The translations under genes and the position numbers were made by a program. Shown one piece after another: positions 42,001 to 45,281 of a DNA stretch of 64,000 nt. A model generated the notes under the pieces. That model searched no databases. It was given only the letters and a program-made list of their open reading frames with translations, and was not told the origin of the DNA. Origin of the DNA: Calcarisporiella thermophila CBS 279.70 (Eukaryota; Fungi; Calcarisporiellomycota); assembly GCF_041956535.1 (NCBI RefSeq), contig NW_027192204.1, positions 375,140 through 439,139 of the forward strand, read 5' to 3'. Every line of letters starts with the position of its first letter. Position 1 is the first letter of the stretch.

Positions 42001-42868
42001 GAGAAGAATTCAATTTTGTAGTATTTCATATATTACTGTACTTTTTCTTTTGATCTTATTAGCCACCTTTTTTATTTCCTCCTTGCCTTCGTTAATAGCT
42101 TGTTATCTCTATTCGTTTTCAATAGAACCTTTTTTATCATTTTCGTAGTATTGACAGGCTTTAATTACCAATTAATGGTATTCCAAGTTCAAGGGCGAGA
42201 TCTACTATCTGCTGCATTTTCAACGATAGGTTATGCTATTGTAATGATTCTGAAACAAACTCTCGACAAACAGCTGAAGAGAGGAGAGCACCAATCATTT
42301 ATAATGGGTGACTAAATATAAGCTCTCAATATTTTATAATAGGAGAATCTGAATGGGAATGAAAGCAAATTGTAGGATTAAAGGACTATCTCGTTTTTCC
42401 AAGTATACCCCCTAAAAATTTTAAGGTTTATTTTAAGTATGCACGAGTTGCAAAAATGGCATACTAATATGTCAAAGCAATCCTCATTGCACCTGAAAGC
42501 TATCTTGAAACTTATTTTGGTCGCACTCTGCCCAACGTTCTCGCATTCCGTTAGTCAACTTTGAATCGAAAACCTACGCTGAAATAAAATAAGATGAGAG
42601 TAAGTGATGTCTTCAAAGATTTATTTAAAAATAGTTTAATTATAACATTGCCAAAATCTATGAACCGAAAAATTGTCTCTTAAAAGAAGGCATTAATGAG
42701 TCATTAAGAAATGTGAATAGCTTCGATGCACAGCGAATTCAAGATCATGACCTTCTGGAACCATAATGGTGGCAAAGAAAGCCGCACTTAATGCACCTTG
42801 GCTGCTACAATGCTTACATCTGCTGGAATGGCCCCTTCAACCTACCAAGTTATACGAGTAAGAAAACG

Positions 42869-42875
42869 TATAAAA
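42869..42875 (+). promoter_or_regulatory. TATA box of the DDDCC peptide gene (also at 44483-44489)
   Basis: TATAAAA about 110 nt upstream of the ATG, followed by a CT-rich leader. Confidence 0.6.
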
Positions 42876-42983
42876 GCTGGCCATCTCTCGACTCAACCCC
42901 GCTTTCTCCATCAACTGACTCAACTCTTCTCTACTCTTCTCCAATCAAGCAATCCCTTCTAAACCAATTCCCTTGTAGTAACA

Positions 42984-43403
42984 ATGAAGTTCATCACCAT
43001 CCTCTCTGCTTTCGTTCTCTTTGCCGCTATTTCTGCTGCACCCCTCGATGCGACTGGGGAGTTGCAGCGTCAACAAAATGCAATCGAGCTCAAGGTATTT
43101 TGCCATCTCACAAGCACACTGATTGGTGGATGACCATTTTGATTTTTTCACTATTTTCCATAGAAATCGGTTGAGCTGTCGAAGCGATGGCACGATGACT
43201 GCTGCGATGACGACTGCTGCAACGATGATTGCTGCGATGACGACTGCTGCGATGATGACTGCTGCGATGATGACTGCTGCGATGATGACTGCTGCGATGA
43301 TGACTGCTGCGATGATGACTGCTGCGATGATGGCTGCTGTGATGACGACTGCTGCGATGATGACTGCTGTGATGATGACTGCTGCGATGATGTCTGCTTT
43401 TAA
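42984..43403 (+). CDS. Secreted Asp/Cys-rich (DDDCC)n repeat peptide precursor, 116 aa
   Basis: Exon 1 42984-43094 (MKFITILSAFVLFAAISAAPLDATGELQRQQNAIELK), intron 43095-43163 (GTATTT..CCATAG), exon 2 KSVELSKR-W-(xDxCC)13-DDVCF*. Confidence 0.85.
43191..43400 (+). repeat. 15-bp coding minisatellite (GATGATGACTGCTGC) x14
   Basis: Fourteen 15-nt units; much of the variation is synonymous in the Asp/Cys frame (GAT/GAC, TGC/TGT). Confidence 0.95.
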
Positions 43404-44597
43404 GATGCTCAGAAGCCATGTTTCCGTTGTTACCAAGTGCATCGACCTCCTATGTACGTTTTCCCCCCTAATTTTTGCACCCGTTTAGCTCATGCAACCC
43501 AACACTAATCTTCACTGGATCATCCGCTCCTTCTCTTACCAAAATATAAATTCATGCTTTTGATGTATATTCATCATCGAACTTAAAAATAAAAGCCATC
43601 TTAATATTCTAAGCCCTACTCTAAGTTTGAACTGATCTCCAGCTTTTACTAAAGGCTAGGACAATGGCTTGCACAGCATTATTACTTAGAATTTCTTTGC
43701 CTGCCTTTTTTCAACTTTTGATACATCAAGAGAGACCAATGTATTGTTTCTGCCTCCATAAAAAATTTCCATGTTCATATTTCCAGATAACAGCTTCACC
43801 GTAAGACTGCTGAAGCAATTTTATAAACTCAAACACTGTTTTTTGGCAGCCATCAGATCGCAAACACGAGCTAATTGACAACCCCCCTCTTTTTTTTCCC
43901 TCGAATTGCTGTGATACTATTTCCTCCAGATCTCTTTGGATATTAACCCTTAATAGATCTGTATCAATTGCTAAAACCCTAAATTAGATTATTCAGAATA
44001 TGTGTCAAAAATTCTATGCAACCATTCGTTTCATATACATGCGTGGATTAACTTGGCCGAAATGACGTATTGATATGCCAGCGCATCCTTTGCTGCATCT
44101 CAACCCCAACTTGTAACTTAATTTGCTCATCCTCTACCCGACAATTCTCCCAATCCATCAACCCACCACAGACTGAGAATATATATCGGAGTAATTACGG
44201 GGTGAGGAAGACTACTGGTATTTCCTTCCGAAAAGACCTATTGAAGTGAATTATTACCTCTTGTTTAAACTTTCGATCCAAAATAATGGTCTCTTAAAAG
44301 AAGGCATTAATGGGTCATTAAGAAATGTGAATAGCTTCGATGCACAGCGAATTCAAGATCATGACCTTCTGGAACCATAATGGTGGCAAAGAAAGCCGCA
44401 CTTAATGCACCTTGGCTGCTACAATGCTTACATCTGCTGGAATGGCCCCTTCAACCTACCAAGTTATACGAGTAAGAAAACGTATAAAAGCTGGCCATCT
44501 CTCGACTCAACCCCGCTTTCTCCATCAACTGACTCAACTCTTCTCTACTCTTCTCCAATCAAGCAATCCCTTCTAAACCAATTCCCTTGTAGTAACA

Positions 44598-44857
44598 ATG
44601 AAGTTCATCACCATCCTATCTGCTTTCGTTCTTTTTGCCGCTATTTCTGCTGCACCCCTCGATGCGACTGGGGAGTTGCAACATCATCAAAATGCAATCG
44701 AGCTCAAGATTTCTGTCATCCCACAAGCACATTAGTTGATGATTGATCATTTTGATTATTTTACTCTTTTGCATAGAAATCGGTTGAACTATCGAAGCGG
44801 CACGATGACTGTTGCGATGACTGCTGTCATGACGACTGCTGTGACGACTGATGCTAA
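44598..44857 (+). pseudogene. Second, shorter copy of the Asp/Cys peptide gene; splice donor lost and TGA at a Cys position
   Basis: Exon 1 nearly identical to copy 1, but AAG|GTATTT has become AAG|ATTT; exon 2 reads KSVELSKR-HDDCCDDCCHDDCCDD-TGA-TGC-TAA. Confidence 0.65.
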
Positions 44858-45237
44858 AATGTTCAGAAAGACCACATTACCTTGCTCTCAAGTGCGTAAG
44901 TATAGTTTATACATTTCCTCGCCCAATTTTTGCACCTCTCAACTCAACCAATTTGCTGCAAAAGCTCCCCCAATGAATCCTCCACTTCATCACCAAAATC
45001 TAACATCATGCTTTTGATGTATATTCATATTAGATTTCAAAAATAAAAGCTACGCTAATGCAATAAAATAAATCATTATTAGTCCCATTCCAACATAACC
45101 ACAACATAACCACAACATAGCCAATAAATCCACCAAAATGATATTAATACTAAAATAAATTTGGATTTTTTATTTCGTTTTTTTTTTTTAATGGTCATGT
45201 CGAATGCATCGTTAAATCATTATTTCAAGATTGTCGA

Positions 45238-45281
45238 ATATCTGTCATTGCAAATCCTAACGGATTTGCAATGACAGATAT
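45238..45281. repeat. Perfect 20-bp inverted repeat with 4-nt loop
   Basis: ATATCTGTCATTGCAAATCC-TAAC-GGATTTGCAATGACAGATAT. Confidence 0.95.

Follow-up and report, generated by a model that had tools for sequence, protein, structure and literature searches.

We analysed a 64,000-nt stretch of the genome of Calcarisporiella thermophila CBS 279.70 (the window) and describe a gene at positions 42984-43403, here called copy 1. It encodes a precursor with a predicted signal peptide, a short pro-region, one dibasic Lys-Arg (KR) site and an array of pentads of the type Asp-Asp-Asp-Cys-Cys (DDDCC). The family to which it belongs is real, lineage-restricted, uncharacterised and extreme in composition. 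The gene model is very probably correct, its intron, transcript and peptide being predictions from sequence. Tentatively, we take copy 1 to be a working gene of a small fungal family that evolves quickly and whose product would be a secreted metal-binding peptide; as a whole, this reading falls somewhat short of an even chance.

Architecture of the gene and its predicted product

Coordinates refer to the window, and the two exons were read and searched separately. The transcription unit of copy 1 comprises the following features.

42675-42983, + strand: promoter and 5' untranslated region, with TATAAAA at 42869-42875, 116 nt 5' of the ATG; a near-match to the copy 2 promoter
42984-43094, + strand: exon 1, 37 codons, translated into the signal peptide and the first part of the pro-region
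42984-43037, + strand: predicted signal peptide of 18 aa, with Lys at position 2, a hydrophobic core of 14 residues and a cleavage-type end I-S-A | A-P
43095-43163, + strand: predicted intron, 69 nt, GT..AG (GTATTT...ATAG), phase 0
43164-43403, + strand: exon 2, encoding KSVELSKR, the 71-aa peptide and the stop
43164-43187, + strand: end of the pro-region, K-S-V-E-L-S-K-R, with a dibasic kexin-type Lys-Arg at 43182-43187 and Leu at P4
43188-43403, + strand: predicted mature peptide of 71 aa, W-H-DDCC-(xDDCC)12-DDVCF, with the stop codon at 43401-43403
43470-43480, + strand: 3' untranslated region (3'UTR) motif AATTTTTGCAC, also found near copy 2 and the C16 paralogue
43585-43595, + strand: poly(A)-signal-like AAAAATAAAAG, with AATAAA at 43588-43593

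The mature peptide would contain 38 Asp and 27 Cys, the latter arranged as 13 vicinal CC pairs at a strict five-residue period plus one single Cys, with a mass of ~7.9 kDa and a net charge of ~ -38. Asp and Cys together account for 92% of its residues, and the array is 54% Asp and free of Pro, Gln, Ser and Thr. With Cys at 27 of 71 residues (38%) and a size below 10 kDa, the peptide falls in the size and Cys range of metallothioneins. Tandem Repeats Finder delimited the array at 43194-43398 (period 15, 13.7 copies, score 340), and the back-translated two-unit pattern matched 13 times in the window versus 0 expected from 100 shuffles. The translation of copy 1 carries no glycosylphosphatidylinositol (GPI) signal, wall-anchoring domain or Ser/Thr-rich stalk. 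AlphaFold2 predicted no fold for exon 2 (predicted local distance difference test score of 47), as would be expected for an apo-thionein-like peptide.

The original prediction, made from the letters of the window, had placed here a TATA box, a signal peptide, a pro-region, one intron and a single KR site, and had given the peptide's length together with its Asp, Cys and CC-pair counts and five-residue period. Translation bears this out, with the features accurate to the base. It had also remarked that the list of open reading frames misses the frame in question, and this is so: the list is bacterial-style and exon 2 has no start codon, so the exon is passed over, and four other open frames over the repeat are listed instead. 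We further agree that, unlike Kex2-processed repeat proteins, copy 1 has no KR between its repeats; one KR precedes the array and none lies within it.

The Asp/Cys frame is that of a genuine gene

As many as five of the six frames run open through the array, so that open frames alone are no proof of a gene. A non-functional origin was also weighed, either as a 15-bp minisatellite open by chance in several frames or as a dead member of the family. It would draw support from this openness, from six identical central units that point to very recent slippage, and from the adjacent copy 2, which lacks the GT donor and the Trp codon and has TGA at a Cys position. Four independent lines, namely paralogues, selection, variation within the array and landmarks of the transcription unit, nevertheless point to the frame that reads Asp and Cys (the D/C frame) as that of a real gene.

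Selection was assessed on the 45 codons of the pre-pro part. The ratio of nonsynonymous to synonymous substitution rates (dN/dS, Nei-Gojobori) is 0.09 between copy 1 and copy 2 and 0.23 between copy 1 and the paralogue on C16, and the differences at first, second and third codon positions number 12, 7 and 22. Within the KSVELSKR segment, copies 1 and 2 differ by three substitutions, all of them synonymous. These sequence comparisons strongly support purifying selection on the pre-pro part.

Variation within the arrays was examined over 53 pooled units, chosen by the translated pattern x-(D/N/G)-(D/N/G/V)-C-C. The minor-base fraction reaches 15-45% at third codon positions, where the exchanges are exclusively C/T and synonymous, and is at most 6% at first and second positions, the variable x residue excepted. 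The third-position changes would alter the protein in any frame but D/C. This agrees with the original prediction, which took synonymous variation between units as support for this frame.

The flanks of copy 1 and of the C16 paralogue cannot be aligned, yet their promoter, 3'UTR and poly(A) landmarks stand at corresponding distances. Copy 1 has GTATAAAA at -116 and CGCTTTCT at -84, against -113 and -81 for the C16 paralogue. Past the stop, the 3'UTR motif, also written ATTTTTGCA, is found at +67 in both genes and at +73 in copy 2. For AAAATAAAA the positions are +182 (copy 1) and +185 (C16 paralogue), and this word recurs 170-187 nt past the stop in four of the five paralogues. Three paralogues that have otherwise diverged carry the (A)ATTTTTGCAC motif, at 43470-43480, at 44925-44935 and at ~1506-1515 of the C16 locus (L053); it is a candidate regulatory element of the 3'UTR.

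Moreover, the D/C frame alone is preceded by a conserved signal peptide, an intron and a KR-W junction, and a stop directly follows the array in all complete loci. Four genes from Mortierellaceae, described below, likewise have the signal peptide, the junction and the stop after the array in this frame only. Together with the third-position-only variation, the low dN/dS values and the intact splice signals and promoter of copy 1, this makes a non-functional origin very improbable.

Five loci with independently expanded arrays

A pattern scan of the 28.2-Mb C. thermophila assembly detected the pentad at five loci, two in tandem in the window, one on C16 and two on C19; the reversed pattern, scanned as a control in the same assembly, gave 0 matches. 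Identity in exon 1 ranges from 65 to 95% among the paralogues. The C16 paralogue is complete and shares 73% nucleotide identity with copy 1 in the pre-pro coding part. Its predicted intron of 70 nt lies at the same codon boundary, is in phase 0 and begins with GTATTT. It retains the signal peptide, the motif K-S-V-x-x-x-K-R-W and 13 pentads, and its stop comes two residues past the last CC. The other loci are as follows.

44289-44857, + strand: copy 2, the tandem paralogue, 1614 nt downstream of copy 1, with a near-identical promoter
44598-44708, + strand: copy 2 exon 1, near-identical to that of copy 1
44709-44776, + strand: copy 2 intron-like stretch, donor GT changed to AT
44777-44851, + strand: copy 2 exon 2, KSVELSKR, H-DDCC-DDCC-H-DDCC-DD, TGA
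G000:C19:467235-468407, - strand: C19 paralogue L054, 5' half reads N
G000:C19:493341-494582, + strand: C19 paralogue L055, 5' half reads N

Copies 1 and 2 differ by a single base over ~370 nt that run from ~42675 into the early codons of exon 1 (~43048), whereas their introns are 78% identical and their 3' flanks still less alike. This near-identity, set against the lower similarity further downstream, indicates a recent gene-conversion tract covering the promoter. Beyond the tract, copy 2 has lost the Trp codon and holds only three DDCC units, followed by D-D and by TGA at the expected Cys codon. An in-frame candidate donor, GTCATC, lies 6 nt downstream of the lost one, and is poor beside the donors of the nearby GAA1 gene (GTATGT, GTAGTT and GTGAGT). 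Whether copy 2 is a decaying copy or encodes a weakly spliced short isoform is about an even call; any decay would be recent, because dN/dS is low.

The two C19 paralogues lie 27 kb apart in inverted orientation, and their upstream flanks are near-identical. Their blocks of N measure 932 nt (C19:467476-468407) and 1124 nt (C19:493341-494464), begin at the same flanking base and may be scaffold gaps. In one of these genes the visible part of the array alone holds 17 pentads.

Each array has expanded independently and with its own codon spelling, as far as the sequences tell. Six identical GAT-GAT-GAC-TGC-TGC units make up the centre of the copy 1 array, GAC-GAC-GAC units occur in runs in one C19 copy, and the C16 array alternates HDDCC and DDDCC in a ten-residue super-unit. 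Since each locus expanded with its own spelling, repeat number is labile and long arrays arose repeatedly; the number of pentads ranges from 3 to more than 17 among family members.

Relatives in Mortierellaceae

The five C. thermophila loci are absent from the protein databases that we searched. A word-indexed protein search with exon 2 gave no match, and the ESM Atlas no usable one. Exhaustive phmmer against 1.84 billion representatives returned 45 matches, nearly all of them unrelated acidic repeats of pentad periodicity. One stood out, a hypothetical protein of 155 aa from Linnemannia gamsii (KAK3843584.1, P0115). A profile built from this protein and two exon 2 translations added three further proteins, with E-values of 7e-9 and 2e-8 that are driven by the low-complexity repeats. 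They come from L. elongata, from Lunasporangiospora selenospora and from a Logan assembly (94 aa). The first two are recorded as follows.

JOS17DRAFT_730642, 107 aa: L. elongata relative, hypothetical protein
BGW38_010641, 152 aa: Lunasporangiospora selenospora relative, UniRef label 'Secreted protein'

All four relatives consist of a signal peptide, a pro-region, the junction L-L-x-(K/R)-R | W-(H/N), 3-14 acidic-D-D-C-C pentads and a stop. The junction of the L. elongata protein, L-S-K-R-W-H, is identical to that of copy 1. Across the family, signal peptides were judged by inspecting translations, and every complete member has a signal-type N-terminus followed by a non-repetitive pro-region. 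In six of the seven members a single (K/R)-R, usually with Leu at P4 or P3, directly precedes Trp, which has His, Asn or Asp as the next residue; the exception is copy 2 with its lost Trp. The x-(D/N)-(D/N)-C-C units reach to within 1-4 residues of the stop. The two groups also differ. The Mortierellaceae genes are intronless, unlike those of C. thermophila; their pro-regions are longer (50-110 aa), Ser/Gly-rich and not alignable with that of copy 1; and x is often Glu or Lys in their pentads.

The genes of the four relatives, each a single gene, occupy one conserved syntenic site, in the order ERp38-type protein disulfide isomerase (PDI), hypothetical gene, peptide gene, ORMDL and uS8, which makes them mutual orthologues. 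At all four loci (L056-L059) the ERp38/ERp29-type PDI gene precedes the peptide gene by 2-4 kb, an arrangement that may be mere synteny. No synteny with the C. thermophila loci was detected: ORMDL and the ERp29-type PDI are on other contigs there, and tblastn between the loci was empty. Common descent of the two groups is likely, as judged from the sequences.

The original prediction recognised no family with this combination of features. That statement stands only in so far as the family has no characterised member, and has to be amended for hypothetical proteins, of which there are clear relatives in three Mortierellaceae species. These are annotated only as hypothetical or 'secreted' proteins. 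Literature searches (DDDCC; Mortierella with secreted, Kex2 or cysteine-rich; secreted or extracellular metallothionein; Mortierella metallothionein) returned nothing relevant.

Predicted release by a kexin-type convertase

The signal peptide would carry the precursor into the endoplasmic reticulum (ER). A kexin-type convertase would then cut after Lys-Arg in the late Golgi and release a peptide of ~8 kDa that starts with Trp-His. Kex2 prefers an aliphatic residue at P4 and Lys-Arg at P2-P1. Cleavage is proposed because the site fits this preference, because the genome holds six convertase loci and because, outside the repeats, conservation across the family is highest in the residues directly after the dibasic site. 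On this sequence evidence, kexin release of a peptide beginning with Trp-His is rather probable.

The six loci with a kexin-type P-domain (P_proprotein) include two head-to-head pairs; among them are the following.

C5:1110032-1112179: kexin-type P-domain locus
C7:757755-759762: kexin-type P-domain locus
C17:258385: kexin-type P-domain locus
C19:558104: kexin-type P-domain locus

The proprotein-convertase set looks expanded for a fungal genome of 28 Mb.

Precursors of this build, with a signal peptide, a pro-region, a dibasic site and an aliphatic P4, are also those of alpha-factor, of the Ustilago Rep1 repellents and of KEP-type proteins. The peptide released from the alpha-factor precursor likewise starts with Trp-His. 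Unlike KEP-type proteins, copy 1 has one cleavage site and one low-complexity polyanionic product, and no repeats separated by KR or RR. The likeness to alpha-factor raises a different function, that of a secreted bioactive peptide which acts on other organisms or as a signal, for example an anionic antimicrobial or effector that strips Zn or Ca from competitors or hosts, or a pheromone-like ligand recognised by its Trp-His N-terminus. The alpha-factor-like logic of the precursor (signal peptide, pro-region, L-x-K-R, W-H), a weak match of exon 1 to MF_alpha_N (15.4 bits, below the cut-off of 22), the Trp kept after the cleavage site in all members but copy 2 and a fast turnover of copy number and length typical of effector-like genes all speak for it. 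Against it stand the variation in length, a 3- to 17-fold change that a ligand would not withstand, and a peptide body of purely low-complexity sequence; no receptor or partner is indicated. We regard a bioactive peptide as quite unlikely.

The same precursor logic bears on whether the product could be a ribosomally synthesised and post-translationally modified peptide (RiPP), with Cys and Asp modified after kexin cleavage, since a signal peptide and Kex2 sites are likewise features of fungal precursors of the dikaritin type. Copy 1, however, lacks KR between its repeats, and the five loci are dispersed. No RiPP tailoring gene (DUF3328/UstYa, tyrosinase, methyltransferase and others) was seen beside them or beside the Mortierellaceae loci, and a RiPP precursor is extremely unlikely.

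A candidate exported metal chelator

The preferred reading, metal binding, starts from the pentad itself. The released peptide would be an unstructured polyanion in which 13 di-Cys pairs, each beside two or three carboxylates, bind many divalent soft or borderline metal ions. Because a DDCC pentad supplies two thiolates and two carboxylates, and because the paralogues often have His at x, binding ions of the Zn(II) or Cd(II) kind with high capacity would chemically be the most natural activity. Zn(II) or Cd(II) would be the likeliest ions, with Cu possible, at about one ion per one or two pentads. Its place of action would be the secretory or vacuolar lumen or the outside of the hypha, where it would buffer, detoxify or scavenge metals. 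Its metal capacity would be set by repeat number and altered quickly through slippage of units.

The exact DDDCCDDDCC coding pattern occurs at 35 loci in the prokaryotic genomes and metagenomes scanned. Where the pattern recurs and is clearly coding, it falls in linkers next to the HMA domains of P-type ATPases of 840-915 aa, interleaved there with His tracts. These pumps have CPC, N-x7-K and the HMA motif D-C-x-x-C, and none of the copper signatures checked was found in them; their sequences match the pattern of Zn/Cd/Pb-type P1B-2 pumps. Contigs labelled 'human gut metagenome' that carry the motif encode bacterial ATPases. The remaining matches are small membrane-anchored proteins or DUF4342 proteins with Cys/Asp tails. 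The linkers, rich in His, Asp and Cys and found in bacterial and archaeal P1B-2-like ATPases and HMA proteins, place an identical DDDCCDDDCC in binders of divalent heavy metals. They differ from copy 1 in having only 2-6 units among His tracts and in lying in the cytoplasm within large enzymes; the likeness is convergent, not homologous.

Several of these proteins deserve mention for their own sake. In the P1B-2-like ATPases of three bacterial metagenome contigs (L013:5584-8112, L003:179-2773 and L017:2953-5697), DDDCCDDDCC(C) alternates with His tracts; the arrays sit between two HMA domains or form a long N-terminal array, and look like a metal-binding linker of high capacity that is little described. 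Arrays of (CCGDP)n follow lipoprotein-type signal peptides in prokaryote-like proteins (P0142, P0149, P0120, P0117), and a (CCDDE)n tail occurs on prokaryote-like DUF4342 membrane proteins (P0154, L006).

For plant analogues, affinities have been measured. With its 13 di-Cys motifs, the C-terminus of the plant Zn/Cd pump HMA4 binds about 10 Zn; replacing CC by AA abolishes the sites with KD <10 nM (PMC10654040). The CCxxE motif in the N-termini of HMA2 and HMA4 binds Zn at nanomolar affinity (PMC6255694). Like the HMA4 tail, the copy 1 peptide has 13 CC pairs in an unstructured sequence, which in the case of HMA4 is rich in Asp/Glu/His. The tail is, however, cytosolic, attached to a pump, 470 aa long and irregular in spacing, and ends in His11, whereas the copy 1 peptide would be free and exported and is strictly periodic; the two are not homologous. 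The analogies with the DDDCC linkers and the di-Cys motifs lend indirect support to the chelator put forward in the original prediction.

Metallothioneins, phytochelatins and the engineered (Glu-Cys)n peptide 'EC20' resemble the copy 1 peptide in being small and Cys-rich and in combining thiols with carboxylates. Metallothioneins and phytochelatins do not fold without metal, and their capacity scales with length. Metallothioneins differ from the copy 1 peptide in being cytosolic, in using CxC and CxxC instead of CC motifs and in having few acidic residues; the synthesis of phytochelatins is enzymatic, by way of gamma-Glu bonds, and not ribosomal. The signal peptide and the kexin site predicted for copy 1 are absent from all of them. 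No Pfam metallothionein model matched the exons at E ≤1. By analogy, the function would lie nearest to that of a metallothionein or a gene-encoded phytochelatin, yet the peptide matches no metallothionein family and is not predicted to be cytosolic.

The exons were also compared with other Pfam families. Exon 2 matched Keratin_B2_2 (PF13885) at 33.2 bits, above the cut-off of 27, and the C16 paralogue scored 30.8 bits. Keratin-associated proteins (PF13885/PF01500) share the CC-x-x-x pentapeptide periodicity. They are, however, mammalian and intracellular in the hair cortex, have pentads rich in Pro, Gln, Ser and Thr, and lack Asp runs, a signal peptide and a pro-region. We rejected a keratin-associated identity, the score reflecting CC-x3 periodicity and composition only.

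The same periodicity raises the possibility of a disulfide-cross-linked acidic matrix peptide, in which CC pairs would form disulfides between chains and Asp runs would bind Ca2+, hydrate the hyphal or spore wall or template mineral. The original prediction had named a cross-linked wall or spore-coat protein as its other option. Besides the Pfam match, this alternative gains from the oxidising route through the ER, which favours disulfides, from the PDI gene upstream at all four Mortierellaceae loci and from the fact that Asp-rich proteins are classic templates of Ca minerals. The Pfam match, however, concerns periodicity alone, in a family that has the Pro/Gln/Ser pentads missing here and is mammalian and cytosolic. 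The PDI linkage is missing in the C. thermophila genome, the peptide has none of the anchoring features looked for (GPI signal, wall-anchoring domain, Ser/Thr-rich stalk), and members with 3-5 pentads would be poor cross-linkers. We consider a matrix peptide unlikely, if less so than a bioactive one.

Several points weigh against an exported metal chelator. The main objection is that the secretory pathway is oxidising, so that the 27 cysteines may be disulfide-bonded and barred from metals; a peptide bonded in this way during passage through the ER would favour the matrix role instead. The fungal metallothioneins known so far are cytosolic. No metal-related gene was seen adjoining any of the five loci. 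Finally, the likeness to the Mortierellaceae proteins consists of a short junction motif and low-complexity repeats without common synteny, and because the shared non-repeat signal amounts to about six residues only, it may be convergent. Weighing these points against the chemistry of the pentad and the analogies above, we place a metal-chelating role of the mature peptide somewhat below even. The more specific proposal is doubtful: that copy 1 encodes the first natural, gene-encoded, exported fungal polythiol-polycarboxylate metallophore, released by kexin and offering one Cys2/Asp2-type site per pentad, with a capacity set by a fast-evolving number of repeats, and used by early-diverging soil fungi (the Mortierellaceae and the lineage of C. 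thermophila) for buffering, scavenging or detoxifying Zn, Cd or Cu outside the cytosol.

Genomic surroundings

The genes around the five loci suggest no pathway common to them; they code for a WD-repeat/BEACH-like protein, GAA1, two ABC transporters, an M13 peptidase, a lipase and TRAPP subunits. Two candidate links were rejected. The C14 and the C16 loci each have an ABC transporter gene 8-9 kb downstream; the two transporters show no similarity to each other at E 1e-4, and because of this dissimilarity we take the parallel as coincidence. An M13 peptidase lies near a C19 locus and near the L. gamsii gene, with no supporting similarity. The best matches of the GAA1 exon beside the tandem genes are only 48% identical, and the genes downstream of those matches are unrelated.

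Two further elements lie 3' of copy 2. At 45091-45123, just 3' of the gene, the 11-nt tandem repeat CAACATAACCA occurs in 3 copies. At 45238-45281, between the 3' ends of copy 2 and the convergent GAA1, an inverted repeat pairs perfectly over 20 bp around a loop of 4 nt; it could represent a terminator-like element working in both directions or what is left of a transposon.

Significance

With 92% Asp plus Cys, the predicted peptide is among the most extreme in composition of conserved eukaryotic gene products, and its family has been missed by gene callers. Since the repeats expanded independently at each locus, the family makes a clear-cut system in which to study how selection acts on repeat number. 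If the peptides bind metal, they would be a ribosomally encoded extracellular or lumenal counterpart, in fungi, of the cytosolic metallothioneins and the enzyme-made phytochelatins. They would also provide a natural model for engineered (Glu-Cys)n bioremediation peptides, and would add a further layer of metal homeostasis in the Mortierellaceae, which are abundant soil and rhizosphere fungi.

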